From: Bispira polyomma
Taxonomy: Eukaryota
NCBI GenBank assembly: GCA_965649765.1
Contig: OZ287754.1
Location: 51,522,001-51,586,000, forward strand
Direction: 5' to 3'
Length of the DNA stretch: 64,000 nucleotides
Positions 22,001-57,900 of this stretch are shown one piece after another. The notes below the pieces were generated by a model. That model made no database searches. It saw only the letters and a program-made list of their open reading frames with translations, and was not told where the DNA came from. Numbering within the stretch: position 1 is the stretch's first letter; every line of letters begins with the position of its first letter. Position numbers and translations under genes: made by a program.

Positions 22001-22343
22001 ACTCAAGTATGAGTGGTTTAAGTTTGAGTTGGAACATGCCATTATCAGGCTGAACACAACAGGAAAGAAACCGATTGTCATCACACTTCACAACATAGGC
22101 AGTATTGGGGGGAACTCAGCAGCCTCACACATTTTAGGTTTGAATCAATATCTGGAATGGGTGGATGATGACAATGGAAAGAAGTTAATGTGGAAAAAGC
22201 TGGTCAAAATGTTATACGGCAATAAAGACCATTGTGAAATGGGTTGCACCAGCAAATGTTTGAAGAAAAGACATAATGGATATACAAGGATTCCATCAGT
22301 AACTCAAGATGATATAAATATATTAACCGTATCAACCAAATGA
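19098..22343 (+). CDS. TLR: Toll-like receptor (signal peptide, LRRs, LRRCT, TM, TIR), single exon; likely ATG at 19098, alternative ATG at 19065
   Basis: LxxLxLxxN repeats; LRRCT NNILCNC...C...C; TM at 21630-21698; TIR from 21804 with FDAYVAY and BB loop LCIRDRNFMPG. Uninterrupted ORF of more than 1000 codons. Confidence 0.96.
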   Translation: MGGTHIIVVLSAVFFSFFQVKLVISCDFEELQTVGIQKGKHYTGVNTNISGKTNIALLAEYEDEYTQTSERELEEKHDDHHRVRRINTSETDVKDVLTVGKNTQSRHKTAREWYKLFQPCSLKTLLPNNCVPFLSHTSVDCASCQYDTDYFNTSVCFLHYPVNLTDALMQREIDLKKTKSLKLVLNNTWTGFIQYRNVLDLTRMKYMTKLVRFQVIICYVEYSSKYHIEYQNDTFEKLSEMIKLRINVPMYFAKLTEIVSHFPKLQILDLSYVRVIGMNEMAQTVQTVKKTIKELVLNNFQMIGDNRYHDTLCFSKFFGNGTRFRKLQDLTIRDNSLTRIIPGISRAAPNLNILDVSRNIIIDSRNVAFLLEVFLHPNLRCLYAADQGIIGGGPDVYQHVRKPDNQCLKERDASLLQYPGATASKTLSKTSVSQKSIDHFRFSSLENRKSSTSSSVKYSAFKKNIDRKLRIKGKSLAREQATSQVVKQSPPIYFNQVAYNHFIYCANEILNPSGPINITLFFNGSDQKSRLFRLIKCMLPYQFDDSIPTHILPTLSETYSYECMFCTKVPFGKNLLKVDISNQHWEKSITLGLNLHGTFCVRKNNLQSFRLSDNSAWLKSFKIENDFRHLKSFDGVEKLRFLDISNNDITFNVLREWGSFPNLQNLSLSGNNISFAASFEFCDNRSVLLTSLNLYKCSLGLKGSLPVHLVRGCSYLKVLHLDGNSLNSSDLETLRFDGVHSLSILNLTENDLTALTDTFITKLKYLQAIKDTESKNLTIDLTNNNILCNCGYYEFAMWLVIGHHKDTIHIQNGDQLKCLNVYDSVMLISKISLKDFHDVCSDVKVISMSVAITVGSVLIVVVLILLYKNRWRIRYTLFRIQQSCKYLYYRATNDEKEIIPFQFDAYVAYADDDRYWVCTSLLSKLENECSLRLCIRDRNFMPGCSNLELILRGIEKSRHMIIIFGKNSLKYEWFKFELEHAIIRLNTTGKKPIVITLHNIGSIGGNSAASHILGLNQYLEWVDDDNGKKLMWKKLVKMLYGNKDHCEMGCTSKCLKKRHNGYTRIPSVTQDDINILTVSTK

Positions 22344-33970: not shown

Positions 33971-34192
33971 AAAAAATATATGTGTTGCTTTCTTGACTTG
34001 GAACTTAATAATGGTGAATTTGTGAGATAGGCGGGAAGAGTTATGCTATGGAGGAAGGTGATTGGTCACTTAGCCTAAGTGTGCTAATATCTAATTGGCG
34101 TAACTAGGTAAACAATTTTAAGAGAGGGTCTACATTAAAGTATCGAATTTTTGCCACTGACTTGCCATGCTATACTAGCAGTGACATCAACA
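33971..34192 (-). repeat. Split direct repeat A1 (5' terminus of outer Ngaro)
   Basis: 222-bp copy of 24043-24265; contains CCAAT boxes on the minus strand. Confidence 0.95.
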
Positions 34193-35129
34193 TGATCTCC
34201 CATATCGTAGTGATTAGGGAGTTTATCTGTAGCACAACAGTCTGTAACGTCAAGGGATCATTAGAGACAACAACCATTGACCATATTATCTTCTTAGAAA
34301 ATGCATGTTTTTTTCTTATATAAAATACAACTTCTATTATCTGAATTTCTACAAACAGAATATTTAATTTTATTAACACACTTTCTCTCTCCCCAGTTGG
34401 AAATTTTTTGTTTTTTTTAAATAAATGTATAAATTTTTGTGTTAGTTTGTTTCACATTTATTGTGTCGCAAATTATACGTATATCTGGCAAATGTTGCCT
34501 TCCTATTTCTTTTTAAGAATACCATAGTTTTAGCGTTGACCATACTGAACATCACAAGGCATAGACAAAAATGATTACATATAACTCATCTGTAAAGGTT
34601 AAGGTGAAGTCATGGTTAGAGTATCAGACATTTTATATCTACAGGACCAAAAAAATCAAAAAATCTAAATGCAATGTGTGATCTTCGTCTGCAACATGTG
34701 TCCATTATTATTAAAAGTCTTAAAGATCCGCTAAAAGTCTATGCCCGACACATTGTTTTTGTTATACAAAGGAAGATTTAACTTTTTCTAAACCTCGATA
34801 TGGTGACAGTAGTAGGACCATAAACAGTGACATAAGCATTAATTGTTATAACCATAACAATGTGTTTCAAAATGCTAATAATACTGATGATGATATTTAT
34901 TGCTGTTTATCTAAACCATCACTACAAAAGTATTGTGGCTTCCAGGACATTTTATTATGAATGGGTACAATTTGGGGAAAAACCGGGAAATGTCCTGAAT
35001 GAGGCCAATATAAACAATGACAGAGAAATTCGTGTGCTAGATATGAGTTCGCCATATGTCAGTCATATTACCAGTATATTACTAGAGTGATATGGTCCAT
35101 TGTTATCTATGAGTACATATGTATATCTC

Positions 35130-35700
35130 CTAGAAAAAGTAGCAGATCAGGTGTTTACTGACTTATACAACTTTATAACAAGACTTTCTGGCTTCCTATT
35201 AACAAAGACAAGGTTTCTACCACACATACAAATTACTTGCTTAAGAATAAATGCATACTTATAAGAGTGCAACACTAGTATTATACAGGACAAGCTGAGA
35301 GAAATGCATGCTAGTGGTTGTAAAGTATATACCAAGAAATGGGAAAGCTCGTTTCTGAATAAATTCATTAGATAAGCAAGGTTACCCATCAACAGGATTC
35401 TTCTGGAATTACATAATAACCTACCAGCAAGTCAATTTAACATGATGGCATTTATGCTGATTTATGCACATGCTAATTTAAATTGAAACTTCTTGCCACT
35501 GTACATCATTATTACGTTCACTGAGCCTATATGAACGAGTATTTCACATACCGTCCATCTGGATGCTAGCCTCGCAGGTAAGGGTGTCACTTGGACTAAT
35601 CAAGCTTCTGTCATCCGGTGTTTAAACAAGACATGTTGATTTTTCCTCTCTTGGTGTTAAACATAGTAATCACTTGTAATTCAGGTAACCTCTCTACGAA
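35130..35700 (+). mobile_element. Highly decayed RT/RNase H remnant of a third Ngaro-like element
   Basis: Peptide relics such as PINKDKVST, IQITCLRI, KFIR*ARLPINRILLEL, FLPLY and VHLDASLAGKGVTW are colinear with the pol of the other two elements. Confidence 0.6.
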
Positions 35701-36925
35701 CGAAACCATTATAAGATCTTCAATGATCTAGTGGAATATCCAAAAAACTCTAAGGATGGAACGCATGAGTGGTTAAAGATTACCATAGACTTCCAGCAGG
35801 CTAACATGATTATAAGTTCACAGCAGCTCTCTAACTGGTTGTGAGCACTGTGTGACTGGCCCTTAAGATGGATCACCGGGACAAACCTGTATAAGAACTT
35901 TGTCTAGTAATTTCCAAAGCATAGAGTAACTGGGGGTTTCCTCGGCCACCTTTGGCTTCTCTGTGTAGACATATATCAAGCGTACCTTTAATATTGTCAC
36001 ATCATCTGAGCCGTATTATTAATGTCCTCAAAGTTCCATTTCCTGGTGCTTCTGTGTTGCACCCATTAGGAAACCATTACATAAGCGCAGCTTCATCTTA
36101 GAGCTACTGATGTATGGACGTTTCTAGTCGTAGGTTGTAGGCCGGTAGTAATTTCCAATTTGACAGACAGGAAGAGAAGTTGCAGTACCCTTCTATTAGC
36201 ACCTTTTTCCACCTTACATCTGCCAATGTGTGAACGGGGCATTAGAAAATCCATCATCAATTAAAATCTAAATCAAAACAGTTAAATTATGACCTCAAGA
36301 AATAGCTGACAATTGCATTGACATGAGTATATTGTATGGAGGTGTTGTCTCCTAAAGAATTATGTCCAGAGCACATTTCAGTATTCCAAACCATTATGTC
36401 TTGGTCACACTGAGTACGTTAGCGTTGCAAATATGAAGTTCCACCATAGATTTCAAATTGTTAATAAGAACCATTTTAAGGCCACTGTATGGGGTATATG
36501 TGCTACAAATTTAATTCCTAAAGTGAGGAAATATCTTGGCAGCACAGCAGTCCTGCTTTAATGGGTTTCACTGTGTCACACCATGTATCAAGATGACACA
36601 GTGCCAACACACTCGCCTCCCACCTCTATGGCCCCGGTTCACATCTTGGCTTGGGCTTTAAGTGAGTATGTTGAAAGCGACGTGTCAATCTTGTGCCTTA
36701 TAATCCATTAAATCACAAGACACCACAGTATCAAAGGTATTTTTAGATGCACTTTAAGTAAAACACCTTGTGACCTCCTTGAACATAGCTAGAAAAAGAA
36801 GCCAGATAAACAGTAAGATAATTAGACTTTAAGCTTCTTGAAGATTTACTTTTCAGATATATGTGTGGAGTTTATATGACCAAATTATCACAACATTCAA
36901 CAGATACATCAATAGGCATTCAATC

Positions 36926-39900
36926 ATGGTGATGCATCATCTTATTTGGGCATTTTTTGTGTACACAGTTGGTAAGTAATAACTATGGTTATAATTTATA
37001 ATTGGAAATACTGTTAAATTTCTATTATCTGAACATGTTGAGAGAATAATTGTTTAAGTATTAGAAGGTTTATAAAATAGAACAGGCATTTCTGTACTAA
37101 ACAATAGGAAAAAAAGAAAATTGGGGGGAGTAGAAAATGAGTTTATGACATAAAATATTTGGATAACAGAAGTTTGGATAAAAGAGGTTCAGTAGATGAC
37201 ATATTTCGACTTACTGACATGTTAAGTAAAAGATTTGCATCACTGTATTAAATTTGATAAAGCAACAGTAGTGGATAATATATATTTATAATTTGTAGAT
37301 TTAATATGATCGTGTCAATGATTTATAAAAATTTAAATAAAAGTTCACCAGAAATAAATTAAAGTTTGTTGCAATAATGGCCAAAAATATTATGTATATT
37401 TCTGTGTGTTTTTGGATGAATATATTATTTACTTTATTAACACTTTTGAACTACACTTCTTGCATTGCCATTGTAGTTCTCACAGTTACAAATCAATCAG
37501 AAGTGAACTAAATAAAACAAATAATCAATAACATTTTTTTAATAAAATTCACTTTGTTAAAATATCACACATTTTACTACAGTTGATTTTATCAGTATTT
37601 CGTATGGAAAGCCAATGGCTTGCACTTATGCTGCACATTTTTCGAGGCATGCACTGAACAAGGATGCAAATCTTATTCTAGTTCAATTACAGTGGAAGGA
37701 TTTACATCTCTTGATTAAAGAGCATCACCTAAGGTGATCAAATACCACTTTCAATTTTAAACGGAACTCTATATACCACAGTTCTTTGGGGTCAAAATGT
37801 GAGGTTGTTTTAGATATTTATATTTATGTAACACAGAAAAAAGATTACGGAAAATGATTTATTAGTGACTAGCTTTAGTAAAAACTACAGGTTCAAATAT
37901 ATACAGTTTTAAGTTAGGGCATAAGGACACATTAACTTGAGTCAAGAGTGAATCTAAGGTTGACATATGGTCACCTTAGCTGGAGTTTAAGAATTGATTT
38001 AAGCTTGTATAACAACCCTGTATAAAAACAAACGACACCAGATCTGTTCACTTTCTCGCTACTAACTCTAGCCTCTCAGACGTGTGATGAGAGCAATGGC
38101 TGGTACCAACTGGAAGGTGACTGTTTCCGTGTGAGTCGTTCAGCGCCTGAGACTCAAATGACATGGTATGAGGCCAGGGAGACTTGTCTAGCAGAGGGTG
38201 GGGACCTGGCCAGTATACACAGTCTAGAAGAGCAGGCCTTTATCCTAACACTGGTAAGAACTACAGTACATAACTCCGAAAGAAACTCAAGCTTAAACTC
38301 AAAATCAACTCAAATATAGTGCTATGTGTGGAAGTCATTGTACATGGAATAAACCTATATTTGTGACCATTCATTTTAATTGAAATTTCAGTGCTGAATT
38401 TAAATATGCAGTCAGATTTTACTCGCGACAGATTCTATATATTCTATCTTACAAAATATTTGAACTAGGGTCTGTACTCAAAACTCAGAATCAACTAAAA
38501 TGGAGGTCATGTGGAAATCTTTGTGAAAGCTTGTGTTTGAGTTGAACTTCATATTTTCACAAATATGGCTACTGGTTCATTGATTATGCAGGTGGTAGCA
38601 ACTCAAATTTACAGTCTCCTTTCAAATGCTCTTCCTATTGAACTGCCTCCATCGGCACCTAGGCTTGTTCGAGGATGACCATTTATCAAGGTACCCAAGG
38701 ATCTTTATTGTGCCACTGGATCATTATGATTTCATCCATAATGATTTTCTGCCTGTATTTGCATTTATTTGTATGAACAGACATATTATTTAGATAGACA
38801 GTTAATAGATAGATATTTAGGTGCAAGAATTTCAAGAGAACCTATTCATTATCGGACCAAAAAGAGTCACTTCTAAAACTGCAAGAGTAAAAGTGACTTG
38901 TAAGTACAGTGGTCTATTCACCTCCCACAGATTACTTCAACATATAAATGGTATAGGAACTTTCATATGAATAGATTGTTGACTTGTGATACCAACTAAC
39001 CACAGTCATTTTTAGGTTGCTATATCTTTGAAGTCGGATTTGTCACTGATTGATTGAGGGCCACAGATATGATATAAAGAAATAGTATATTAATCAGATT
39101 TTAAGTACATGCTTTGTAGCAATAAAATAAGGTACTTGTAATAGTAACTAGATCACTCTGATCAGTTAGTTTATCACATTAGTATTCCATCCTATCTTGA
39201 CATCTTGTCCTTGAATATACTATGATGCTACTAGGCCCTTTTAATTCAATTTAAGTTTTAAAACTACCTTAATAGTAAAACTTATTTCCTTATTAAAATG
39301 AAATAGCTTAGACATGTTACTATTTCCTTTGAATAGACTTTGGAACGAGAAACTCAAAAAGTTTCATCTTCATCTTTATTTGTACACACGGAGCAGCAGG
39401 GTATATTTTGAGATTAGAGTGATCCTAAATTAAGACAATTGATAAAATACAAGTCAAGGGGTGCTTGTAATATCAGTGGCTTTTGTGAATAAGACAATTG
39501 TTAGTTGTTGAATGTTAGTTTTGTCAAATCATTATGACAGGTTTGTTTTTTTTTTAATAATTTTTTATATTGGTATCTATTTGTGTTGAGACATTATGCT
39601 GCTGAACAGTTTGTCATGTTTGCATTTTGGAACTTTAAAGTTTAAATTGGTAGAATTAAATTTCAACTGGCCAGGTCATATTATGATACAAATTCACTGG
39701 TGGTAGAAACCAGTGCTGAACCACTGTGAACCATTAACCAAGGTCAGGTACCTGACCACATGAAGGAATGATTGAGATTCAAATATTGATGACAGGCCAG
39801 TGATAAATAACAGTAGACGCTTCTAAAAATTAAGCCACCAAGCCCCCCCCCCCTCCAAAGTGAGAACCAAACCTGGCCTTTGTACTAGTACACCCAAAAC

Positions 39901-42900
39901 TCTAGTATGTGTTAGTATTAGAAGTATATGGTATGTTAGTATTACTTAATATTTCTCCCCTGAGCTGGTTGTCACAAAATTCTTTTTCTTGAATTTCATT
40001 GGTTGAAAATATTGAAATATTGTTTCAGACCTTCTGATTGGCTAAAATTGTGAAATCTTACCAATTACCTATTAAATGTGGTATCCTAAGTAACGTGATC
40101 TAGAGGAGATCCAGTTATCAACCCAGCAAGATTTGTTTCTGTAAAAAAGTGATATTAGTGAGTTAATCTGGTTCATACCTCGATTAAAATCACCTTGCAA
40201 AAGCTTAACCTAAATACACCCCCCCACCCATATTATTATTATTATTATTATAGATTTTTAACGCGCTTTATTGATGCTAGGCATCTTCTAAAGCGCAACA
40301 GCAGAATCATTAGTCCAATTATTAAGTCCATGGAAATTGCAGAGTTGTAAGGAAGAAAGTGGGAGCGTGCACGAGGAAAGCTAAGGTGGGTAGGCAAGAT
40401 TAAAAAGATAGGTTTTAAGATTTTTCCTAAAACCAATAAGTGTGTCAACTGATCTGAGGTCAACTGGGAGACTGTTCCATAACCGTGGAGCTGCGGTGGA
40501 GAACGCTCTGAAACTCGCCTTTCTGATTGGTCTGACCGAAGTGACAGAGAGTCTCTTGCCTCTCTTGCAGTTACTGAAGGAAAGAAGGGCGGCAAGGTAG
40601 GGTGGCTGTTGAGTGATTATAGCCTTAAAAGTGGTAACGTGAATTTTAAACAAAATTCGAGATTTAATGGGCAACCAGTGTAATTTTTTGAGGTAAGGAG
40701 TGACGTCTGTGCGACAACCCAGGCGAAAAATTACCCTACATAGGTAGTTTTGGATGGACTGGAACTTTTTAATGTTTGACTTATTTGCTTCGTACAAGAG
40801 AGAATTGCAGTAGTCGAGGCGGCTACTTACAAGGGCATTTGCCACAGTTATCGCTGTGTCCATGGACAAGTGGTTTCTGATTCTTTTGATGTCGCGTATG
40901 TGGTAATAGCAGGAGCAAAAGTGACACCCAGATTTTTAGCATTTTCGGAAGGTAGTATGTCTTTTCCCAGCAGGGAGATGGGAAACAAAGATTTTAGGAG
41001 TTCACTGTTTTTCTTGTTTCCTATGAGGATGAATTCTGTTTTGTCAGGGTTAAGCTTTAGTTTGGAGTAGTTCATCCACGCCTGGACATCAGACAGACAG
41101 TCTGCAAGTAGGTCTATGTTAGTATCTGCGTTTTGTGGATTGAGGGAGAAATAGACTTGAGTGTCGTCTGCATACATGTGGTGTTTTATATTGTGTTTAT
41201 TGATGACAGTGCTGAGAGGATGTGTATAAAGGGTGAAAAGTAGAGGACCAAGGACGGATCCCTGGGGTACTCCATATGGAAGTTTTATGGAAGATGATAG
41301 GTGATCATCTAGTTTAATTCTTCATGCTCTGGCATAGTAGTTTACGAGTTTGCCTGATGATTGGTCGGATAACATTCTTGGGCAAGAGCTGAACATACTA
41401 TTGCCACGTGGGTAGAACACATCATCTGTTTATTCGGTTGTTGCACTTTAAAAAATGAAAAAAATATGTTAAATATAGTTTAAAAACACAATAGACAATG
41501 TTAGCACAACAAATAAAACAAGTTAACAGATCAGAGAGACCTACTGGGGCTCATTTACTGCTATATTTTACTACACAGTCACATAAACAGAGGCTTCTTG
41601 AACCAAGACCAACTAGCTACCTAAATTAGCTAGCTTGTGTTAAGATATTTTAATCTATGTACGATTTTATATAATCAAGCCCATTGACTTCTCAAAAGTT
41701 AAAAGTTAAGTTAAATGTCTATGGAAAGAATTTGGCTTTTTTTTACAACCTACCCTGCAAAAATTAAATCATGCCTCACTAGTACAGTTGTTTTTCCTGT
41801 TTACTTTAGGTTATACTGAAACATGTAAACTATGTATTTGATTTGCATATTATTTACAGTTTATGTTGGGAAACAATGAACAAGACAGCTTGTCGTGAAT
41901 ACCAACCAATACTAATTTGTAGGGACAGCCTGGTGCATTTTGTGACAAATTGAAAGATGAGTTTCATGTTTGATTTTTCAGGCTACCAATATAGGGTTGG
42001 TTGGTCCACACCTCTGGATGGGGATGAACCAGCTGAATGAGAGATCCGGCGCTTTCAGGTACAAGCTTGTGATCAAATATAGCTCTTGAAATAAATTTCT
42101 ATTTTACCATATATATGACAACCAAATAATATATATATACGTATAGATTTTAATATTCCTATCTGTTAAACTATATATAGTGAAGTTTTACTTTAGTTTG
42201 TGTTCAACGTCTCTCGTAACACGTCTTGTGTCATATCAAAATGGGTAGTTCAATGGTGGTGGAAATCAGTTATAAGGGAGTTGGTCAAGGTTTTTTCCAA
42301 ATCTCCGATCCTCAACAAATCTAGTGCCAACTTTCCCACGTACACACCCGTGCAGAGATTCAAACCCAAGACTGCAGTTATAACAGGCGGATGTAATATC
42401 ACTACACCAACACCGATGGCTCTGTATTGTATATCTTATAATACATTCAAATTTCTGTGACTGGCCAGGGGTGTTTTCTTTCATTTATTTGCAGTTAAAA
42501 CATTTTACTTGCTGTTTCTTGAGACTTTTTTACTCTTACAAAGTTTTTAGTAAGTGAATATTTATCATGTAGTTGAAATTAGTTTGATTTTACAGCACTT
42601 TTAGCAGCTTAGGTCATATCACGATGGCCAGATTCAGTGGTAGAAGAAGCTAACGACCTTCGCCAAATACATTTACAACAAACTTCTCCACATAAATGAG
42701 CTAATGAGATTTAAATTGAAAACGTAGTTTAGAGATTGTAATGCCCCAGTAATCAGAAGTGCATGCTTCACAATCTCTAGCCTGTCACCAAAATGGGGTT
42801 CGAATCACATTTGTTCCTCTGCGTGTAAATCCGTGCCAGGTTTTTGCTGTAGATTGGTGGTTCACAGTATTTTAGCACTAGTTTTTTCTTGAAGCTAGCC

Positions 42901-45900
42901 ATCGTGATATCACGTCAGATGTTGAAAGGTGACATAAAACCCAAGGAAATACAAACCTATTGCTTTATATTTGTGTTGTACACATAGTTGGGTAGATGGT
43001 TCAGCAACTGCATGGACCAACTGGGCCACTTCACAGCCAACATCAGGTGGTCTAACAATGTGTGCTTACACTGTCACTGAATCAGGTAAGGGACTAATTC
43101 AAACTTTTTTGTATCCTTATATAGTATTTTCTTCTTGGCTACTTGGCTAAAATAAAGCTAATATTTGTTGTTAAGACTGTACATATGCTATAAACCAACG
43201 TTCTGACAGTCTGTAAGTTCTACTAGTCCACTATCACAGAACTACAACCAACACATCAGTAAAGAATCCCACTTTCATGGTTACATTTTAGTCTTAGTAA
43301 TAACAAAGTCAGACTCCTTGACTTTCATCTTTGTGGAATCATTTGTGATAGAAATTTCATATTATTTTACTGTCGGTTTGTACATTTAATTCCCTCCAAA
43401 TGTAGAGTAGGCAAAATGATCAAATTCAGAAAACTGAACAAAATCTACAGTGACAAGTTCCAAGCAGACATTGCAGCCTCCTAGCTACTCAGTAACTCCA
43501 GGACAAATGCCACTAATCTGTGTGATCAGTATAATCTCAGAACAAAATATTCACAGGCATGCCGCTTTTCATAAAAAAAACTGTATCGTCCCACCTAGAC
43601 AGCAGCTGGATCCCCCCGGAAATCACTGATGCTAATAGGTGGAAAAGAATCCTCAAGTGGCATAGTATCTCTGCTGCTAATTTCACTCAAAAAAGGATTA
43701 CAAGCTTTAGAAAAAAGCACATATGTAGTAACTTGATTTTTCGCCTTTATATTGTCTGCTGGTTACGATTGAACCCTGATCACGAACCTTTTCTCTCATT
43801 TGACAATTATTTTGTATGCCGACTGGAATGTACGCCACAAAAGATGCCTGGTGATCACTTGTGGTACCATAGAAGAAAATCATTCCTATTTGTAAGTCCT
43901 CACGCTTGTACTATATTTTGAAACAATTTTGCAGTAAATTTTCATTTCGATTGCTCTAACTCTTTGCCAAAGAGAATATTTTACCATCTAAGTGAGCATG
44001 TTAGTTCAGTTGAATTAAAAATTAAATTTTAAATTACATTGACTTAATATGTTTCTGTGTCTATATTTTTAGGACCTAGTCCATTTGAGTACTATCCTTA
44101 CTACTCAGCCCTCTATGGCATTATGAATCCAGACTATGACTGGCCCACAGATGCCGACAATGTGAATACATTTTACTTTGGACAGAACTATGCCTGGAGC
44201 TACATAGATTGCCAGAACCGTTGTGAAGCAGTGAGTTGAGATAAAATGATACACTAGAACCTCTATTATCCAAACCTATTCAGATAGATTTTGTTTTGAT
44301 AAAATGAAGGTAAAGAAATAAAAGAGTCATGTAAGTATGAAGAACAGGGAAACATAAATTGGGGAGAGTGCAAATGTATGTCTAAAATTAAAAAATTCAG
44401 ACAATAGCAGTTTGGATAATAGAGATTCCAATGTAATAGCAGTTAATTTGACCTACTGTTATATTTTTGAATGGTAAAGGGAGACTGTATCTTCATTTCA
44501 TGCTGTATTTTTACAGTTATATACTATCAATAGTGTTTTATGGTAAATATACTGAGTGATATTTGTTTCTAAGAGATATTTTGATGTATTATCACATAGT
44601 TTCTTTTGTTAATACATTATGACATAATTTACAAACTACTGTCTATCTGGGTCAATTCTAATGATGTCTGTAACCACACTGGGTTGCTCACTTACGTGTT
44701 TAAGTCTTATTACTGTCTGAGTTAGTCCAACGCGATAATAAGTCAGCAATTCTATTGTCCGTGCCTAACACATGTTTATATTGCAAATCAATGTCTGCTA
44801 ATGCTAGTTTGGCTTACAAGTTAAAATAGGCACTGTACCAAATGTACCAAATGTTTTAGAAATGGAAAACAAGTTTTTGCTTAACAGTTAATACTAGATG
44901 CTTTTTAGGCTTACTTTCGCCTAAAGTATATTGTTTGTTTGAGTAAAAGAAACAGGTTAGTGAAATTTAGATGGTAAGCATCCACATACTATAACCAAGG
45001 TGGTCATCGTAGAACATCATTTGGCGACCATTGCAAGGAAGCAAAAATAAGCACTCCATACCAAGCAAAGGTTTTAAAAAAACAAAACACGAGTTTGCAC
45101 TTAATACTAGCAATTTTCAGGCTTACTTTCGCCTAAAGTATATAATTTTAAGGAGTGACAGAAACAGGGTGATGCATATGGCATTGAAATTTAGATGGTA
45201 AGCATCCACATATTAAAACCATTGCAGTACATCATTTGGCGACCATCGCAAGGAAGAAAACTTGTATTGTAGCAAGCCATTTTATGCAAGTAATATATTT
45301 TGTATATATTATGTATAGCACCCTGACTGTGCTGCTGCCACTTTCTGGGACTATCACTACTATTACTACTGGGATCACGTGTGTATGGGGAGGACTGACT
45401 TCTTTAATGCCCTTGGTCCAGACAGCTACGCAAGCAGTGGAATCAGAACCCTTGGGGGTGGTGATGCAGGTGAGTCTCATTAAGGTGTACCATCGCTTTC
45501 AACATAAATCGTGATGTATCACAATGGACAATTGGCTGTTGGAGGACATCAGAACAGAGGAATTGGTCAATGTTTACTGCTCTTTTCTGCAAACCACCGT
45601 CCCTTATGAGCAGGTCTACTGGCAACTTTGCAACATACATGCCAGAGCCAAGAGAACAACAGCAGAGTAGGGAGGAGACCGAGTTTGCTGTCCATCAAAA
45701 ATATTTTGATTTTTATTGATGTATACACGGCCAGGGAGGGCTTGTTTACTATAGCAAATCGTTGTAAATCTGACACAGCACTTTATTATATTCTCTTAAA
45801 CAGGAAATATACAGCAATATTTTCAAATAATGATATTTAATTAATCCAGTACTTTTAGGTGGGCCATAAGTTATAATATTGTGTACAGCTATTTGATTAA

Positions 45901-48900
45901 TCAATATACAACCACAGACTAAATGGACAGATGATCATTTTTTTTGTTATAGGTGCCATTACACATGTAATTTTATTTTTACTATGGTAAACATCTCTGG
46001 CCTTCGCCCTTCGTACATCAGTAAAAATCAAAGCATTGTTAATGACAGAAAACTTGGTTTAAATAGAGAAACTAGTTGTCATGATCTTGACCTAGATACG
46101 GTCAGGTTGAAAAATCATCAAAAACGAGAAAGCGCTGAATTTTATTTCCAAGTTTTATTTTTCAAAACACTTTTGCATTCAGTATATAATGTATATCTTC
46201 TCCACAAGCATGTAATACAAATTGTATTGAGAGATAGGTCAGTTCTCACTCCAGTTAGGATGGCTTCTTTATTGAGGTAGTCAACTTAATAATAAATATT
46301 TCAGGGGCTGTGGAGCAGCTGATAAAAAACAATAGTAACTTTAGGGCTTATAAATCTCTCTGTATTGAGGCCAGAGATAGTCATGTTTATGTTGTTTCTA
46401 GTATTTTGATTGTTTCACTAAACTGTATCTCTCTATTTCATTTGACACACAGTGGGCTGGTGGTACGGTGCTAACTGTGGACTAAACAATGGTGTGGCCT
46501 GTAGAAAAGTCGTAGGGTCAGATGCGCCAATCACCATCCCACCCACTCCTGTGGTGGAGTCTTTCTGTCCTGATGGATACTTCAGTGCAGGTCTGCTTTT
46601 TCATGACTAGATATTTAAGTGCCTTGCAAACCAGGGTCTGTTTGAATATGTTCTAAGCCAATGACATATGTGGCATCAACTACAAACATCTCTGAAATTA
46701 AAAAATTCTCTCGAAAGATTTAATGCAGTGTGAAAGCTACATCCCATTTAGTTTTTTTGTGTTTAGTTGGATTGTATGTAACCAAAACTGGTTTGAAATG
46801 ATTTTTATAGTGTATGTAGGATTATTTCTATACCAATCATTACAGAACATTCCACCATGTATTAAGCCCGCTTTACATATAGGCGACAAAACAACAAAAA
46901 TGTTTTTTTTTATATAACAAACACAATATTTGTAGTACATTCTTGAAAACTATACAGTTTGTTTACAAAAAATCCTCTTTAAATTCAAGCTTTGCCCGAA
47001 GTATTTTTATCAAGATGGATTCTATCTTTATTACGCTATAGAAAATTCATACCTGTAACAGCACTTTTTACTATCTCCTTATATCATTTTCACTTCATTT
47101 TCTGTACTTAAGATTGTTTGGTGCTAATGTTATAATATATCTATTTGTTTTGATATATATGTGTTACAGTCAATCTGTGAAACCAGTCATTACACATAAT
47201 AACCAAAATTTTCAGTCATTTCGCGTAATGCCTAAAACCACTAGTTATTATGCGTAATGACTAAAATATTTAGTCAATTCGGTAATGCCTAAAATTATGG
47301 TCCAGTCATTATGCGTAATGACTGAAACTACATTAAGTAGACAATAATATTATATATCATGATCACATGTTTTTCAAATGCAATTTGTTATGTAAATTTG
47401 AGTATTTTTAATACTTCATCTTCTTGGTAGTAGGTGTTTTCCTTTTCCTTGCCATATTGTATTATTAGTTATAATAAGAAACGAAACAAAATGAATGAAT
47501 ACAAGCTGTTGTTTATTATACAACAATGTTACACACTAACATACAAGATAAAACATATAATTTGATAAAATAAGGATTACACACTGATTTATTACTTTCT
47601 ATCAGCACTAAATATTCAGAATATAAATTTGACCAAAGATAACTTTGGTTAATTCCATTAGTTTCCGATTAGGTGTATGTTTCCATTTTTTGTTTAGAAA
47701 AAATTATTATTGTCATTCAAAGACAAATGTATTAAATATTTGCAAAATTTATGTGTAAGTTGTGGAAATATAGGAAATCCAAATTTTGAAGAATCTTTGT
47801 ACACACATTCATTTGGTATATCAACCCGACTTATAGGCCTTAAGGCTCAGTGTTAGAGATTAATTTGTGTGAAATATTCAACTAAACCTTCACACAGGTA
47901 GCAATACAAATGAATCGATTACAAAGGAAGGTTTATGCTGAATTGCAATTAAAGCAATACCAGTGGACAAGCTTAACTTCATAGTATTCATCAACTACTT
48001 TTATTTTCTTTAAACTTTGCTTCAAAATAACAACAAAAAACATCAAAGAAATGGACTTTTTAAAATATCAAAGAAGTAAACCCATTCCTATTTAAAGGAT
48101 AAATTATAAAATATTTCTAAATTTTATCTTGTCAATCACGCAAGATGAAGCCACACTTGGATACTTATAATGTTTAAAATTATGTTAATTCACATAATAT
48201 CATTCCAACCTGAGATACCTATAATGCATAAATTTGAAATACTTTAATTTTAAACAATACTTCATAGAATGTAAGTAACTGCTGCTGCAAAATAAAGGTA
48301 AGAGGCTTTTTGCATAAAAATAATCTTTATTAAAACATACCGTAACATATCTACCAAAACAAAAGAATATTTAATTTACTTCCTACACCTCATCACAGAA
48401 AACTATTACCAAGATAATTACACAGATTGACTGAACTCTCATAATACTGATTAGGCAATCTGTGTGAAAATGAACCACAAATTTCAGTCATTACGCAAAA
48501 TAATTGGAAATTTTTTGGTCATTACGTGTAATGACTAGTGGTTTCAGGCATTATGCGTAATGACTGGTTTCACAGATTGACTGTAACATATATATATACG
48601 AGCAAAACTATGGGTTTGCGAATATATATACTATATATATTTACACATTTTCTCATTTCTTCCAAGTTGTGATAAAGCACGCCTTCCGACTTTGGTTTCG
48701 ACCACTAGAGGTCGGCATGCTACAGTCTTTTTTTTGTAAACAAGGATGACCTTAAAACATAAGATAAATACCATTTTCAAAATGATGGGTGAGAAGTGGC
48801 TAATAGAGAAGAAATTTCCTTGATTCAAAAAATATATTATTATTACATGAAAGTTTGACAAAATATTACCTTATATGCACATATAGTTGCTTCAATCCAT

Positions 48901-51900
48901 TAAAATATCTTTAGTTCATGAGACTTCGTAAACAATGATCAAATATGGCGACCGACCTCATTATATCTTAGGCGAGGCAGTCATTGGCTGACAATCTGGG
49001 CTGTTTCCAATGCGCATGTGTAGAATGCCGAGCAATATGAGGTTAAAGTTTTTTAATTGTATTAATTGGATGAAAATTTTCGGAATTTAAATGTTCAAGA
49101 ATAATTTCATACATTCAGAATCAGTGAATCAATATTTCCGGGGAAGAATTACATAATACATAATTTGGGGTCCTTTTTTCACGAATTTTATACAGCAGTT
49201 ACTGAATTCCTGCAATTCTGTAGATAATTTAAAACCATAATGTCTTGACCAGTTTTAGAACAAACATGAACAATTTGATGCCAAACAGATGCATCAATAT
49301 CTATATGTACTTCTTCATTCCATTTACGTTTGAAGCTCATATTTATTTAAACATTTTGTATAGAAACCTTTATTTGAAAATTTTTTTAGCTACATCAATA
49401 GCAAAGTTAAAAATGTAAAGTTTAAATTTGTCCCGGTCTAAATAAGATGTTACTTAAGATAACTTTTCAATGAGATATGTTTCCTTCTTATCCATATGAA
49501 GTTGGCTTTACTAGTATTCATTCTTAAAACAGAGTTCGGCTACCTATAAATAAATAAGAGTAACAAGGTTGCATAAACATAGTTGCAATATGTGGAAGTT
49601 TGTTGTTATTCAATTAATTGCATGTATTTAGTTGCATTGTGTCCTGTATGCTTTATAAAATGATTTACCTTACTAAATATATGTGGACTGCATTGTCACA
49701 GAGCCATCATACTTAAAACCGGGGGGGGGGGGAAATTGTGAAAAGAGCGAGCGAAGATAAGCCTTCGCAAACAAATAGGTTTGGGGTTTTCTTCTAAAAA
49801 AAATGAGTGAAGATGCAGTCCAAATATATCCCAAGTTAAATCATTCCACAACAGCCGGTGTTTTTGTCTCGCAGACAGAGAGCAAGGAAACAAGTGCTTT
49901 AGAGTTGTGGAGATTCCTAGTGAGACTCAGGGCTTTAGGTGGGAGCAGGCACTGCTTCTCTGCAGGTCAGGGCCAGGAAACAGGCCAGACTTGGCTTCCA
50001 TACAGTCCATAGACGAGAACGGTGAGATATCTGCTATTGCCACTGATTACCTCAATGAATCTGTAAAACCTTGAAAATGAGCTATACTTCTATGCATTAC
50101 TTTCGTAACAAATTCTCTTATAGAATGCTTCTAGAGCTCTCCGAGGAACCCCCTGGGGAAGTATAGGTTATATGATTAAAAAGTGGTTCCACATAAAAGT
50201 TTTATGAGATGGGTTAAACATAGAAAGCTAAAAATATTTTTTTCCTTATTTTGGCTTATTGTAAATTTAAAATATTATAAAACTAACATTTCGGAAAGAT
50301 ATTTATAACCATTTGTAAAGATTTTTCATAATAAAGAAGGAAGGCGACTACAACCTCTATTAAAAACTCATGTGGCATATTTACCAAAAAAATAGACAGG
50401 ATGTTGCAAATGAAAATAAAGGTACACATGACCCAAGCAAGGAATATAAATATATATTACATGGTAGAAAGTCCAATTTGGCAGAATTTGAAACATTTGT
50501 GTGATAGTAAAAAGTCCAGTTTCACAGAATTTTTAATTCTACCGATAGAAAGTCTAGTAAGGAAAAAAAAAACATTCTAAACCCTGCCTGCAGAAACTCT
50601 AATTATTTGTAATAGACTACATACACTACTCAGGAAATAAAACTGAAACTTAAGTTTGTGAAACTCTACATATATAATATTAGATGCAATGGCAATTTAA
50701 ATTTAATGATAGATGACTTAATATATTATACTAATACTTTGAATTTTCAATTTAAATTCTGCAAAATTTGACTTTCTACCGTGACATACATATACAGTTG
50801 TGCAAGCAGCATAGACTACCATTCACATGATGTTGTAAGTATACATAAATATCCATTTCAGCGGTGATAACGTCTCACATTCAGACTTATAGCTGGAATT
50901 ACTGGATAGGCTTGCATTACACTGGTGTACACAACAGCTGGGTGTGGGCAGATAATGATGACAGTTATTACTTCAACTGGGCACCAGGAAGACCTGCAGG
51001 GGTAACAGTTAGACACAGTTTTCTGTCTCAGTTTTGTGGCTTTTAAAGCCACTGGACCGGAGACTAAGTGGTTACCATTAACAAAACTTTACAAATATTT
51101 ACGGCACTTATAACATACAACAAAATTAATCATTTGGTTTGTGGTTGTAATGATTAACACAATAGCCGAGCATAATATTATAACTTATGGCCAACCTAAA
51201 GGCACTTATTTACATTAATATTATTATTTGAAAAAATTTCTGCAAATTTCCTGTTGTATAGTATGGAGTAAACTGCTGTGTCCGATTTGTAAAATTTTAC
51301 CCCTAACTGTGCGTATTATCAGTAAAAATTAAAGCATCATTCAGGGCAGAAAATGCTGGTCTAGGGTAACACTATACTTTAGTCTTCTACTTCTATTTAT
51401 AGGCGCCTCATTGGTGCAGTGGTAACACACTCACCTACAAACACACTGATCAACTACTCAGTTCTGATTTCCTCCACCATTAAACTGCCCATCATGATAT
51501 GACACAACCATCTTGAAAGCTACCTAAAACCTAAAGTAATTTAATCTAATCTAATCAAAATGAATGTACAAATATGCTAGTTATAAAAAGGCATAATTTA
51601 CCAGATTATATGTGATGTTAGGTGTGGCGTACCCATAATAGTATAAAAACTTTAAAATTGTTTCGAGGTTAAGGATTATTGAAACACACTTTTGATATCA
51701 ACGTTTACAGATACTTTGTTTTAGTCAAATGGACTTTTGGCCAAGGCCCTTAGCATTTATACATGTTCGGACAATGACATTGGTTGTAGATGTGAAAAAA
51801 TTATACACTTTTTTCTGTGTTCTATTGTACTGGGACTGTATTCTCCAAAGAAATTCAAGCTAGACGTCAAACTGAACTCAAATTGATGTTTTATGCAAAT

Positions 51901-54900
51901 CCTTGTATATGGAAATAACCTATACTTGTGACCATTGCAACGCTGAATCAAATTTGTAATCGGATATATAGAGACTTTAGAGTTGCGCTTGATATTTAGA
52001 GAATACCACCACACTGGTCTACTTTAGGATGCTGCTTGTGTGGAGATGTGGTCTCTGTCAGGTCCAGGTGGACAGTGGGGAAATCAGGTGTGTGATCAGA
52101 GAAGAGGATACATCTGCCAGACATTTAAAGGTGAAAAAAAAACACTGAAATAAACAGTACATTTTGGTGTCAACTCCAAAAGCAAGTTTTATTAAATTGA
52201 CTTGATGTGCTTAAGTATTGCAGTTTCTGAATGTATACATATAGCAAAACCCCATTTCCTTCTGTGATTAAGTCATTTCATAGAATCAAGATTCTGAATC
52301 TATGAGCACCTATGTTTATTGTGTCCAAACAATATAGATGCAGACAACATAATTCCAACACCAGCCTTCACCACTCCTCATGACTGTGCAGCTGGTTGGA
52401 CTCCATACTGGTATGGCTGCTACCAGTTTCAGAGTGAGCTCAGAACATGGACTTCTGCCAGAGATTACTGTGCAAGTCAGGTAAACAAAACTCATGCTTT
52501 TAACTTAAAGCATCAATTAATGTAGTCTTAATGTGTGAATGAACTTAAAGGCCAAGAATTGTATTTTACTCATTTAGCATGTTGACTTAAAATACTAGGT
52601 GAGGCACTGTTGACAGCTAAAGCCAACTGATAATAACAATTGTCTCTTTTGCTGAAAGTATTAGGTAGCAGGTGTTTTTATCAACAAAAACATTGTTAGT
52701 ACGTTCCTGCCAGAACAAGAGCTGATGACAGGGTAAATATAGAAAATGTAAAAGTTAGGTGATGAAGTATTACCTGATAGCATAGATTGACCATGTTTAA
52801 ACAGACAGGGACACAATATAATAATAAGAATGTATTATATGACAGCACCAATTAAAAATATATTTCTTTTTTATTACCATACCATGTAGTCAGAAAATAT
52901 TTTTATTTATAAGCATGGTGTGTTGTCTGTGTCATTTGTTAGGACTTTTGTGTTACATGCATAAATGAAAAAGAAATATTAAGTTGTAATTAGGTAGTTA
53001 AAAGATATGCCAGGTTTTATGTAGTGTTCTATTGTTGCGTCTTTGAGTCCCTTTGTCCTTCTTCTTTGAAATTTTAATTTTATAATTTTTAACTTTCCTA
53101 TATAAAATGTTATGTGAATTATTTACAAAGCAGAAGACAGTGTTGGTTGGAATGTAAAGCTCAAAATACACACCAATCAAACATAACGGCTGATGCCATA
53201 GATTAGATTGAATACGTTTGGATTACCAGCCTGCCATTGACTTCATACAACTCTGTTTTACAGTATTGTCGTGTGACACACTTGGGGTCATATTACCAGA
53301 CAACGCTCATGCTACCTTAACATTTTTAATTAGTAAAACCAGCAAGGGCGATTTCTGGTATTTTCAGTTATGGAAAACTATCACTAATGACTGTGGTGCA
53401 TATAATTATCTGTAACATAAGGCAATGCATACAAGTAAAATATTAAAAAATCTTCAGGATGAAAGAATCGTTTAAAAGGTCTTCATACTATATTATTGCA
53501 ATACAGGGTGCTACCCTGGCCAGCATCCATGCAGAACCAGAAAACTCAGCAATCTTCTACGGTGCAGACGGATCATTTCCCCTCTGGATTGGACTTACAA
53601 AGGTAAAAACTCTCTACTGTATTGTACAAATGTTGTTCGCTAACATTTTTTTGTTAAGCCACAGATTAAAAAAAATTTTTATGAAAAGCTTGACTAATGT
53701 GTTGAACCAAATTATCAAAAAAATATGTCACACCAAGCTCGTTCGAAACCTACAGAGCTTTGAATATGGTGTGTATTTCCACTTATTCGCCTGTTGTTTT
53801 CGATGGAAAAGCGTGTTTTCAGAAGAAAAATTTCCATAAAAAAGTACTTTGAAAAAATTTCAACCCACAGAATTTATTTTTTTCTCCCCAGTTGTGGTAT
53901 ATTAAAAACTGTAACTAAATATGAGAAAAAATCTACTTTGAAAAAATTTCAACCCACAGAATTTATTTTTTTCTCCCCAGTTGTGGTATATTAAAAACTG
54001 TAACTAAATATGAGAAAAAATCTGGGATTGACAGCACTAATTTTGTTTAGATGTCTGGAATTTTTAGGGCTCAAAACCATATGTTTCTATTGAAATAATA
54101 GGAAACATCTGGAATTTTTCTGAAAATAAACATTATATTTATAGCAGAGTGGCTTAAAAATGGGCAAAGCGACATATCATTCCCAATAGACAATTTAACA
54201 AAGCACCTATTCTGCAATTTTCATGAAAATATATTGAAATTTATTTTTTTGGGAAAAAAATTGCAGCGAACAACCTTAAGTAAATTAGTCTAGGATACGT
54301 GGAAGTCCTGCGTTAAAGAAAGGATATATACTCCTAGTCAATCGTATTAAACTAGCTGTAGGCTGTACCAGAAAGAAGCATTAGAGGGAGAAATTATGAC
54401 AACATTGGAAAGAAAATGCTTATTTTGTTTCTGGAGCCTGATATTTCCATAGGTACCAAAAGTAATGGCCTACGATGCCTGAAATGGCAAACAAACATAT
54501 GTGTAAATATTATAAACACACCCTTTTAGTTAACTGAATTCAAAACTTAAAGGTCAAAATTTCAAGGTGCATCATTAAACTTGAATTTGAATTTGGATAT
54601 TTAACGTCCACTCTAGTACCTTTTTTATATTAGGATGGGTAGTTGAAATGCTGGAGGAAACACTGCATACAGTCGGTCAAGGTTCTGCAGAGAAACCAGC
54701 GGCCCAGAGTAAGGAACTACCACCTTTCCCACGTAGGCATCGACGGGATTCGAACTCACGCCGCCCAGAGGTGAGAGACCAGTGATTGTGAAGCGCAATG
54801 CTTGCTAACCACTAGGCCACCGCGGCCCCGCATCATTAAACTAACACGTTTGGCAAACCTTTTTTGTCAAATCAGTTTAATGGAACACACATATCTGAGA

Positions 54901-57900
54901 AATTGGTACAAATTTGCTATAATAGCCGATCAAACCTAGAAAAATCTTGGATTTTGGACTTGGTGTATATTGAAGCATAAATGTGTCACTTTATGTTCAC
55001 AATTCAACCTTATCACCAAGAAATTCCAAATTCGCAAAGCCTAACATGGAAGAATGAACTGATAAATTTGTCTCTCTCAATGCTTCAAACACATTCTTCA
55101 ATGGTCCTAAATGACTTAGTTACTACCATTAGTCAAAATATCATCCATATTACTTTCAACATTTTGAGACACTTCAACAATAACTTTATTCTATTACAGC
55201 TTGCAGCAGAACTAACAAGACTAAAAAGGACAACTTTAAAGCAAAACATTCCACCATGAACAGTAGCAAAAAGTTTTGTCTCTGTCTTCTTGCTTTATCA
55301 GAATCTGCCAGTGTTCCTTGCTAATGTCTAGCTGTGGAAATAACTTTTTTGAATACAAATTGAAGTATAACTACCCAGGCAATGGGGGTTGACTTTGGAT
55401 ATCAAAATAACAAACTTTATTGAGCTTTCTATAATCAACACAGAAACAAACTAACTTTTTCCTTTTTTCTTAACAACTTCTCTTATTGAAAATGGTAGGA
55501 TGACTTGTAGTCAAGGCAATTCAATGCTCTAGCAAGTTTGTCACCTTGGGTACACATCTGAAAATAAAAATCACCATACTGCTTTAATAGCTTTGCTGGC
55601 TGAATTTGCTCTTACATAATCAGGATGCATTCATGATTCAACACTACATCATGATATAATTCAGACTGAATATCAAATGGAACATCGAATCTATCATAAA
55701 ACTTTAAATCTTTACTTTCAACATTACCAAATTATGCTTTTCTCTGCCAAGAGCCAGGCCACCGCTGGTAATCTAAACACCTGTAAACACCTTCACAAAT
55801 TGACTCTTTCCACACTCAAGTCTACTGTGTGTACCTTGTTCAGCCATGAAAAGCATATATCTTGAAAACACAATGACCGTTAAAGGTAGACTGAAACCTC
55901 CCCATTTCAAATCATAATCTCCTTACACAAAAATATCAACTATAGCCACCCATTTTAATCATTAAAGAACATTCTCAAATCAATAACTTCCAAACTACAA
56001 ACTCACATTGTAATAGAGCTAAAATATATAATGTGTTTATACTAACTTTAATAATTTTCCTTTTAAAGAATCAGACGTCTGGATCATATATCTGGGTTGA
56101 TGGTTGGGGTGTGTTCTACCAGAACTTTGACCAGGGCGGCCAGGATAATGGTGAAGGCTGTGTGATAATGAAGTCCAATGGTCTGTGGAATGATACCCAG
56201 TGTTCTGCCACCCATGCTTCAGTCTGTAAACAAACTGACCGTAAGTGTGTGTGTTGTGCATGTATTTCTTTGGGAAAGAAAATATACACCAACTATTGCA
56301 TTTTATTCTGCATATTATAACTTACTTTTTACTGGTCCGAGCTTGGAATTGGTTTCATACCATTTCAATCAGTAGAATAAGACAAACAATGTAATTTGAA
56401 AAATGAAAGAAACGTTAATTTATTTATGTAAATTGTGAGCCACAAACTGCACAGGTTCATATCATTAAAAGAACACTAAAATAATATTTTCAAAAAGTTA
56501 ACACTCAGATCGACCCTAACCCATTAAAATCAACTGGACTTAAGTACCATAAAGTTCACCATGTTACGTATGCATTTAAGAAAAAGGTGGTAGCTGATAG
56601 CCCAGACAAACAGCAACTATATGCTGAAAATATTGATTTTCTCACTGATCTTACTGTGTACACTTGTAGAGTATTCTCTTCACGTCTAGTGTGATTTTTT
56701 TCCTGTAGATTGCATACCACCTGTTCAAAGGAGAGCTATCTCTAGTTATGTAAACTAATAGCTCAAGAAACAACTCACTTGCAGAGGTGGGTATTTCTGT
56801 ATTCTTTTGACATCTACAGCATACACATACTTCCTTGTTTATTACACTATACATTACCTATATTGTAGAGCCCCCACCCACTGTGGATGCCCCAGATGGG
56901 ACTTACTGTCCTGTAGACTGGATTAAGTGGGGCCTCAAGTGCTACTACTTCTCCAGCATTTCTGAAGACTGGTCAGGTGCATTGACCGACTGTCGTGTGG
57001 TGTGTAAACATCTAATCTAATCTGTTCCTTTCTTTTTAAGAACTAAACTTCCCTAAGACTTGGTTAAAAAGAGACTTAGGATATCTTCTACAAAAATAAA
57101 TGCCCTTTGATGTCCTGATGTGAAGTAGCAGATTGTGCGTCCATCAGAAATAATTTTTGCGGGATTTGATTTAAATATATTTACTTATGTTAAACAATTG
57201 TTTTAATAATTTTAGAAGAGTGAGACATTGTGAAAAACAAATGGTAATATATTTTATAAATTGGGCTAATAATAAATTTATAAGAAATTTGTTCTTTAAA
57301 AACTGCATGTTATAACATAAATGAGTTTCTATCATTTAGTGACATGTTCAATATGCATGATAAGAGACAATGAGAATTCTAAAATGAGCAATATAATACG
57401 GCACTAAGAAAAGAATATTTTGGCAATCATGCTAAAATAGGCTAGTTATTTTAAACACAAAATAGTTCGTTTCAACTTCCTTGATTTATTTATTTATTTA
57501 ATTTGGCAATTGAACGTCCACTCTAGTACCTGTTCAACTTCCTTGATATAGCTTGTCATACATTTTAGGTATCTGATGATGTATGGTCTTACTCTATATG
57601 TTCGTAGTATACAAAATGTAAATATCTAAACTTTAAATATGGAAATTATAGTCATATCTCTGAACACTACCTACTGGTTTGTCTGACTTTTAAAGTATCA
57701 TTAACATTTTTTTGGCTGGCCAGGTACATCCACAACTGTGCATGGGAACGACAAGCTGGCATTGAACCCAAGTGTTCTGTGTTCATAGGAGACTGTACAA
57801 TATTTATGAGATCACAATGACAGATAGTATAGTGTGTGTATATATACACTAAGATGTTCTAGATGACATTTATTTTTCACTTTAAACTATATTTTTTACA

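Follow-up and report, generated by a model that had tools for sequence, protein, structure and literature searches.

A probable PAN/Apple-type module carried by a two-exon cassette inside the first C-type lectin-like domain of a multi-domain receptor gene

Introduction

C-type lectin-like domains (CTLDs) and PAN/Apple domains are combined in an unusual way in a gene that we analysed in a 64,000-nucleotide (nt) stretch of eukaryotic DNA (contig 7, positions 51,522,001-51,586,000, of a 1.035-Gb assembly; this whole stretch is called the window). In this gene, a PAN/Apple-like module is encoded by two exons, B and C, that lie within the first CTLD (CTLD1). Copies of the module are numbered throughout: copy 1 is the window gene, copies 2-4 are paralogs with the same split cassette, and copies 5-8 are paralogs in which the module occupies a single exon. 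The closest described relatives of the host gene belong to the mannose receptor family (MRC1, MRC2/Endo180, PLA2R), which it resembles in its tandem CTLDs, of which there are at least five, as against the eight to ten typical of the family. Unlike these receptors, the window gene shows no ricin-type or FN2 exon upstream and no membrane anchor or tail among the window exons mapped up to position 62276, and its CTLD1 carries an inserted domain.

The closest described relatives of the module are the Apple domains of plasma prekallikrein and factor XI. All copies share with them the C-x3-C-x5(8)-C...C framework, and copies 5-8 also have the outer cysteine pair at the module ends; their Apple repeats are also what the family profile matches, and the order of elements in a low-confidence model (strand-strand-helix-strand-strand-strand) would be alike. 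In contrast to prekallikrein and factor XI, the module here lies inside another domain and not in a string of repeats, and the window form lacks the outer cysteine pair, is split by an intron, consists of aromatic residues to 20-27% and stays below the Pfam threshold. According to Patthy's exon-shuffling rule, it is reportedly class 1-1 modules that are shuffled in extracellular proteins, and shuffled modules normally land between domains. The present family agrees with class 1-1 shuffling in its phase-1-bounded module, which is one symmetrical exon in copies 5-8 and is found in two introns, with one empty site, and it departs from it in that the recipient introns lie inside a domain.

Nematode class IV CTLD proteins with CW/PAN modules likewise unite C-type lectin and PAN modules in one secreted protein, in the arrangement '1-2 CTLD + 1-2 CW' as separate domains; in the part of that paper drawn on here, a PAN domain inside a CTLD is not described (PMC5297725). 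Full-text literature searches found no report of a PAN/Apple domain inside a CTLD. Both domains are well known, and the nesting of one in the other is a new arrangement of known parts. The best overall explanation, which we regard as probable, is that a complete Apple domain was shuffled into CTLD1 and, grafted there, serves as a binding head.

Exons B and C form a frame-preserving cassette

An original prediction from the sequence had described a cassette of two exons interrupting CTLD1. Exons were translated, searched and counted one by one, and direct reading together with exon-by-exon translation showed the coordinates and translations given for the four exons concerned, A to D, to be correct. 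The features of this region are as follows:

42988-43085, forward strand: exon A, a CTLD1 segment with the phase-1 donor CAG/gtaagg (a slash marks the exon border), 56-97% identical in copies 2-4
43086-44072, forward strand: intron A-B, phase 1, GT...AG, not conserved with copies 3 and 4
44073-44230, forward strand: exon B, 158 nt, N-terminal half of the PAN/Apple-like module, ending C-x3-C-E-A, with Pro at the Apple Cys1 position
44231-45318, forward strand: intron B-C, phase 0, within the module, missing from the single-exon copies 5-8
45319-45469, forward strand: exon C, 151 nt, C-terminal half of the module, with a VCMGRTD motif and Gly at the Apple Cys6 position
45470-46452, forward strand: intron C-D, phase 1
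46453-46590, forward strand: exon D, end of CTLD1 and linker to CTLD2, beginning with two bases of a split codon, 61-100% identical in copies 2-4

All four exons have AG acceptors and GT donors, with phases 1/0/1 between them; in exons B and C the acceptors are pyrimidine-rich and the donors read GTGAGT. Set between the two halves of CTLD1, B and C together make 309 nt, or 103 codons. Direct reading confirmed the claim of a two-exon, frame-preserving 309-nt cassette with outer introns in phase 1. The description of both exons as bounded by phase-1 introns holds for the outer sides and fails for the internal B-C intron, which is in phase 0, so that neither B nor C can be skipped alone without a frameshift.

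Genome searches showed that this arrangement recurs. Exon B found four copies, at 100, 96, 54 and 52% identity, and exon C gave 13 matches at an expect value (E) of 10 or less: strong ones at 100, 90, 58 and 53%, weaker ones at 46% and 39%, and the remainder at E above 0.1. Copies 1-4 all lie on contig 7 within a span of at most 160 kb, and in all of them the A-B-C-D order, the exon sizes of 158 and 151 nt, the splice sites and the phases 1/0/1 are identical. The recurrence of four exons with the same boundaries and phases in three other paralogs is far beyond chance.

Conservation between the window and its paralogs is confined to the coding frame (tblastx), and the introns are unconserved with copies 3 and 4 save for repeat-like blocks that match in several frames. 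Compared per exon by the Nei-Gojobori method, the window cassette and those of copies 3 and 4 differ at proportions of 0.74-0.75 of synonymous sites (pS, saturated) and 0.32-0.34 of nonsynonymous sites (pN). In the two recent cassette pairs the ratio of nonsynonymous to synonymous change (dN/dS) is 0.34, based on 6 synonymous against 9 nonsynonymous changes for one pair and on 14.5 against 22.5 for the second; overall, cassette dN/dS is about 0.15-0.34. Judged by these codon changes, the cassette is under purifying selection and B and C are real coding exons. Window and copy 2 share 96% and 90% identity in the two cassette exons and 71-100% in the remaining 15. A faster rate for the cassette in recent duplicates was considered and rejected, since its identity falls inside the range of the rest. 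In copy 2 (loci L020/L017), the A-B intron measures about 8.5 kb, compared with about 1 kb in the window.

An exon C profile was also run against 1.84 billion representative proteins. It returned seven proteins at E<=0.001 and no full-length protein containing exon C. Six of the seven are open reading frame (ORF) fragments of 38-87 amino acids; the seventh, P0006 (526 amino acids), is a repeat protein that was judged unrelated and dropped. The best four fragments share 42-68% identity with exon C of the window and, because no copy in the same genome has those identities, they come from other genomes. In each fragment a Gln, the in-frame CAG of the acceptor, immediately precedes the first exon C residue, which indicates that the start of the exon is conserved. 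A homologous-protein search with the exon B ORF found nothing.

Cassette-like exons were also seen 3.4-3.5 Mb from the window. In locus L021 (contig 7, 55,042,001-55,052,000), two of them, at 5142-5281 and 5857-6001 of the locus, measure 140 and 145 nt and show phases 1/0/1; a CTLD N-terminal exon lies upstream, yet an A-like or D-like exon was not found in about 30 kb. Locus L022 has a C-like exon only (5241-5450), among retrotransposon ORFs. The exons at these two loci may be decayed or rearranged copies.

Single-exon copies, an empty site and the origin of the insert

A genome search with exon D found two further copies on contig 7 (copies 5 and 6) and one paralog on contig 12. In copies 5 and 6, an A-like exon, WSDGSTSEFKDWAAGQPVDGGLQQCVYTEVPYTHPG, is followed by one module exon and then by a D-like exon, LWYSSNCGAPLGYICKK. 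The module exon has 321 nt, phase 1 on both sides and six cysteines, and the two copies form a nearly identical inverted pair. Searching with the module of copies 5/6 yielded two more single-exon copies (7 and 8), 44-45% identical, as well as a distant relative on contig 3 (E 0.007), at the same place as a PAN_4 match of 25.4 bits (cutoff 27).

Comparison of profiles with hhalign placed columns 4-51 of exon B on columns 2-48 of the single-exon module (95.4%, E 1.8e-8) and columns 2-45 of exon C on columns 51-97 (88.8%, E 2.5e-6). Since these stretches follow one another, B and C are colinear halves of one module that is split by an intron. The two forms differ at the module ends. The Apple Cys1-Cys6 pair, which joins the ends, is absent from the window and copies 2-4, where Pro and Gly occupy the two positions, while both cysteines are present in copies 5-8 and in the contig 3 relative.

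At the matching position, the contig 12 paralog shows a phase-1 intron about 1.6 kb long and no module. Its A-like exon ends ...KMCVYADAEGQ plus one base (CAAG/gtgaga), and its D-like exon starts ctttag/GT CTG TGG (LWYTDNC). Copies 7 and 8 show the module exon in a different phase-1 CTLD intron, after a WIGL exon that ends ...YWIGLYRQGQE with the donor G/gtattt. Here the next exon encodes the whole remaining half of the CTLD; its acceptor is ag/AT TCT GAT TTC CAG TGG, and it reads ...FQWVNGNEV...CGEMMSETGEWDDVSC...YVC. The insert accordingly occupies two sites: in copies 1-6 the hairpin that precedes the WND strand, and in copies 7/8 the boundary of the WIGL exon with the WxDG exon. In CTLD3 and CTLD4 of the window gene, the entire C-terminal half is a single exon without an intron at the insertion point, so that the cassette-bearing intron is special to CTLD1.

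By gene structure, the insert would most likely have originated when a class 1-1 Apple exon entered a phase-1 CTLD intron that already existed. Exon shuffling fits best because the exon is symmetrical (1-1), the homologous intron is found empty and a second intron is occupied. The same empty-site paralog, 1-1 single-exon form and second insertion site speak for the exon-shuffling origin that had been proposed from the window, and the comparison of paralogs for presence of the cassette that was called for at the time gives a split module in copies 1-4, a single exon in copies 5-8 and an empty site on contig 12. The direction of change would be gain rather than loss, with six cysteines before four. 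The stages preserved are unusually complete, comprising the empty intron, the single-exon six-cysteine insert, the split four-cysteine insert and the second insertion site.

Copies 7 and 8 share the strands of copies 5 and 6, 12-13 kb away, and may represent a later CTLD of the copy 5/6 genes. Across contig 7 from about 51,747,000 to 51,788,400 (loci L062, L055/L059, L058, L056/L060 and L061), copies 8 and 5 on the reverse strand mirror copies 6 and 7 on the forward strand. No difference separates the modules of copies 5 and 6 (100% identity), and two residues distinguish the ORF list of L055 from that of L056. The arrangement of copies 5-8 has the look of an inverted duplication of very recent date, or might be an assembly artefact. 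At L061 (2646-2999) and L062 (2913-3296 in gene orientation), a Thr/Pro-rich, mucin-like stretch follows the CTLD with the second-site insert, which suggests that this CTLD is the last before a stalk.

Inclusion or skipping of the cassette

A gene built in this way could yield two products, a plain CTLD1 and a CTLD1-Apple chimera, if the cassette were alternatively spliced. In each of the four split copies, where the outer phases are 1, the frame survives if both exons are skipped, and the single-exon forms are likewise frame-symmetrical; moreover, the empty-site paralog on contig 12 demonstrates that a CTLD with the intron and without the insert exists as a gene structure. We nevertheless consider regulated skipping unlikely, as the splice sites of B and C are of the ordinary kind described above and the cassette shares the evolutionary rate of the other exons. 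Frame symmetry, for its part, follows from a shuffling origin and is not in itself a sign of regulation. The form that includes both exons is probably the main one, and probably constitutive. A wider hypothesis would make the class 1-1 Apple exon a mobile 'binding head' that was dropped repeatedly into phase-1 introns within CTLDs, giving a receptor family whose lectin scaffold carries a domain foreign to it, and in which skipping of the insert could switch between plain and chimeric forms and so diversify recognition receptors; we offer it as a speculation to which we give rather low odds.

PAN/Apple identity of the module

The core cysteine pattern of PAN/Apple domains, C-x3-C-x(5-8)-C-x(16-20)-C, is present in the module and invariant in our alignments. 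In the window it consists of C-QNR-C at the end of exon B and two cysteines in exon C with 17 residues between them. The fold and PDB comparisons were based on a profile from alignment A7, which combines the four contiguous modules with six exon-C pieces; exon B rows were excluded because MAFFT had misplaced their last 15 residues in alignments A5 and A6. Alignment A8 holds the four contiguous modules alone. Against PDB sequences, the A7 profile gave 15 matches at E<=10, and the best nine were all plasma kallikrein or factor XI (E 3.6e-6 to 1.8e-4; 3.6e-6 for plasma kallikrein and 1.4e-5 for factor XI), with scores that are the sum over four weak repeat matches around the four core cysteines. 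Next came two apicomplexan microneme Apple proteins (E 1.9 and 4.7). For the contiguous module of copy 6, PAN_1 (PF00024) was the only Pfam family reported (E 0.045, 14 bits), and the module profile matched the genome's own PAN exons at E 0.0011.

A PAN fold consists of an antiparallel sheet that cradles a single helix, with disulfides C2-C5 and C3-C4. The low-confidence AlphaFold2 model of the copy 6 module has the element order strand-strand-helix-strand-strand-strand. When this model was compared with 48,161 chains by VIA-align, PAN/apple structures filled 10 of the top 11 rows, the eleventh being thyroglobulin. The ten, as we identified them, are plasminogen, leech anti-platelet protein, HAI-1, a plant S-receptor complex, three HGF N-domain structures, two kallikrein structures and an Eimeria PAN module. 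The fold evidence, which depends on predicted models, is weak yet would point to PAN. Taking sequence and fold together, the module is very likely a divergent PAN/Apple domain. The PAN/Apple-type identity originally predicted is supported in this way through the homologous single-exon copies, not by the window exons alone.

A number of results weigh against the reading of the cassette as an Apple domain grafted into CTLD1. Several concern the window exons themselves. Pfam found no match to exons A, B, C and D searched singly, the exon C profile gave 0 matches in the PDB, and exon C had no match in the ESM Atlas. Genome-wide scans with PAN_1 and PAN_4 (150 and 115 matches) did not include the cassette. 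With a home-made PAN hidden Markov model (HMM), exon B ranked only 5th and 6th among 2691 ORFs, at E of about 0.5, and comparison of the window exons with the genome's own Pfam-positive PAN exons (hhalign) yielded colinear alignments that were only short (E 0.016 and 0.081). Genome searches started from the window exons missed copies 5-8 and the reverse search missed the window, and the link between the two groups is made by profile comparison and position. Others concern the contiguous module, for which the PAN_1 score of 14 bits does not reach the Pfam cutoff of 21.4, and the A8 profile, which still placed kallikrein first in the PDB, at E 0.14 only. The AlphaFold models are of low confidence (predicted local distance difference test score, pLDDT, 46.2 for exon C alone and 49.3 for the copy 6 module), Foldseek returned nothing at E<=0.001 with the copy 6 model, and the best VIA-align Z of 5.1 is in the range that the tool rates common. 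Finally, three sequencing runs (one study) contained 93-94% of the sampled words, introns included; none is recorded as RNA, and they are evidently DNA because the introns are present too.

The absence of per-exon family matches, the low-confidence models, the empty Foldseek search and the PAN_1 score below cutoff could be explained by a lineage-specific, aromatic-rich fold with four cysteines that is PAN-like in cysteine spacing only. Such a fold is improbable in view of the A7 result, in which nine of the nine best matches were Apple proteins, and of the PAN/apple structures in all but one of the top structural rows. The six-cysteine pattern of copies 5-8, which have a cysteine at both module ends, also speaks against it, as does the contig 3 relative, itself a near-match to PAN_4. 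That B and C lie outside the lectin transcript, as dead exons or as a separate small gene nested in an intron, is in keeping with the failure to find a full-length database protein containing them but is very improbable, given that the exon B ORF lacks a start codon and a signal peptide, that every copy shows phases in agreement with the flanking CTLD exons, and that dN/dS is well below 1, with saturated synonymous sites and a preserved amino-acid sequence.

The CTLD1 ligand site and a model for the grafted domain

In CTLDs, EPN or QPD together with WND are the motif names for the ligands of Ca2+ site 2. By the standard account of CTLD structure, the cysteine of MCAYTV starts strand beta3 and the WND motif lies in beta4, which places the insert in the beta3-beta4 turn. 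This turn presumably adjoins the face through which classical CTLDs bind Ca2+ and sugar. CTLD1 of the window gene has QPT at the EPN position, by alignment with CTLD4, and WYG at the WND position, by alignment with CTLD3; copies 3 and 4 have NMP and WYS. The motif pair for Ca2+-dependent carbohydrate binding (EPN/QPD + WND) was not found in CTLD1. The proposal that the cassette acts as a switch beside a Ca2+/sugar site is weakened by these replacements, and the CTLD1 site is, on its motifs, probably not a Ca2+/sugar site here. Phe, Trp and Tyr make up 20-27% of the module in the split copies 1-4 and 12-15% in the six-cysteine copies.

Returning to the reading that we prefer, we propose that a PAN/Apple domain of about 103 residues was grafted between the strand of the second conserved cysteine (MCAYTV) and the strand at the WND position (GWWYGANC), and that it would have arrived as a unit bounded on either side by phase-1 introns. 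On the branch leading to copies 1-4, the module would later have gained its internal phase-0 intron, lost the Cys1-Cys6 pair that joins its ends and become about twofold richer in Tyr, Trp and Phe. The host hairpin would clamp both ends of the insert, and the loss of the end-to-end cysteine pair may have been tolerated because the hairpin holds the ends. The aromatic-rich Apple head would then project from the face of CTLD1 that is used elsewhere for Ca2+ and sugar. As the CTLD1 site has lost its ligands, the insert probably supplies the binding surface, for protein or glycan, so that the lectin domain would act as scaffold and the Apple domain as binding head.

Production of the chimera would mean that the CTLD fold tolerates a domain of about 100 residues in the hairpin beside its usual ligand site and that exon shuffling can build nested domains in addition to strings of domains. 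In terms of invertebrate immunity, the locus suggests a receptor family in which a lectin scaffold bears a grafted, aromatic-rich binding head.

The host gene and other features of the window

The remaining exons of the lectin gene were mapped as follows:

38083-38256, forward strand: N-terminal exon core of CTLD1 (core limits only), Pfam Lectin_C E 1e-6, 29.9 bits (cutoff 22.6), 76-97% conserved in paralogs
41967-42056, forward strand: middle exon core of CTLD1, with the WIGL-type motif LWMGMNQL, conserved in copies 2-4
49874-62276, forward strand: downstream exons of the same gene, CTLD2-CTLD5, from tblastx against paralogs, with Pfam Lectin_C on three exons
49874-50035, 50861-51016, 52037-52135, 52337-52501, 53489-53563 and 56066-56245, forward strand: exon cores of CTLD2-CTLD5, first part
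56895-57017, 58073-58180, 59351-59560, 60583-60729 and 62184-62276, forward strand: exon cores of CTLD2-CTLD5, second part

The first CTLD1 exon matches the model of C-type lectin-like domains (PF00059), and a hydrophobic stretch in frame before it, resembling the end of a signal peptide, runs straight into CTLD1. Pfam gave no match to the middle exon alone. Exon A aligns with the WVDGS...C part of the Pfam-positive CTLD4 exon (E 2e-5). Exon D, which has no Pfam match of its own, is in register with the CTLD3 segment at E 0.09 only and did not align with two other CTLD exons. Among 36 PDB matches to one CTLD exon of the window gene are chains of MRC2, MRC1 and PLA2R. CTLD1-CTLD5 were mapped by tblastx against the paralogs between 38083 and 62276, and the gene seems to continue past the last mapped exon (62184-62276). 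The window gene is one member of a tandem multi-CTLD (mannose-receptor-like) gene family. The original prediction had also stated that no ricin or FN2 domain precedes CTLD1. Consistent with this, no coding block conserved with copies 3 and 4 was found at 34000-38075, over the 4 kb that precede the first CTLD exon, a weak test in that exon 1 was not located.

The window is gap-free, with no N letters, and its G+C content is about 32-42%. Its longest uninterrupted open frame, of 1103 codons (19032-22340, forward strand), lies upstream of the lectin gene. A long open frame at 11495-12841 resembles a split one at 16240-18404; 'sulfotransferase-like paralogs' is only the label given to them in the original prediction. 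On the reverse strand at 55374-55469, a 32-amino-acid open stretch ranked first of the 2691 ORFs with the home-made PAN HMM (E 0.0019, 15.4 bits) and may be a chance match or a stray PAN-like exon fragment. Intron blocks at 38324-38719, 40243-40891 and 54578-54852 match paralog loci in several frames and at several places, and are probably dispersed repeats or transposon fragments, not exons.

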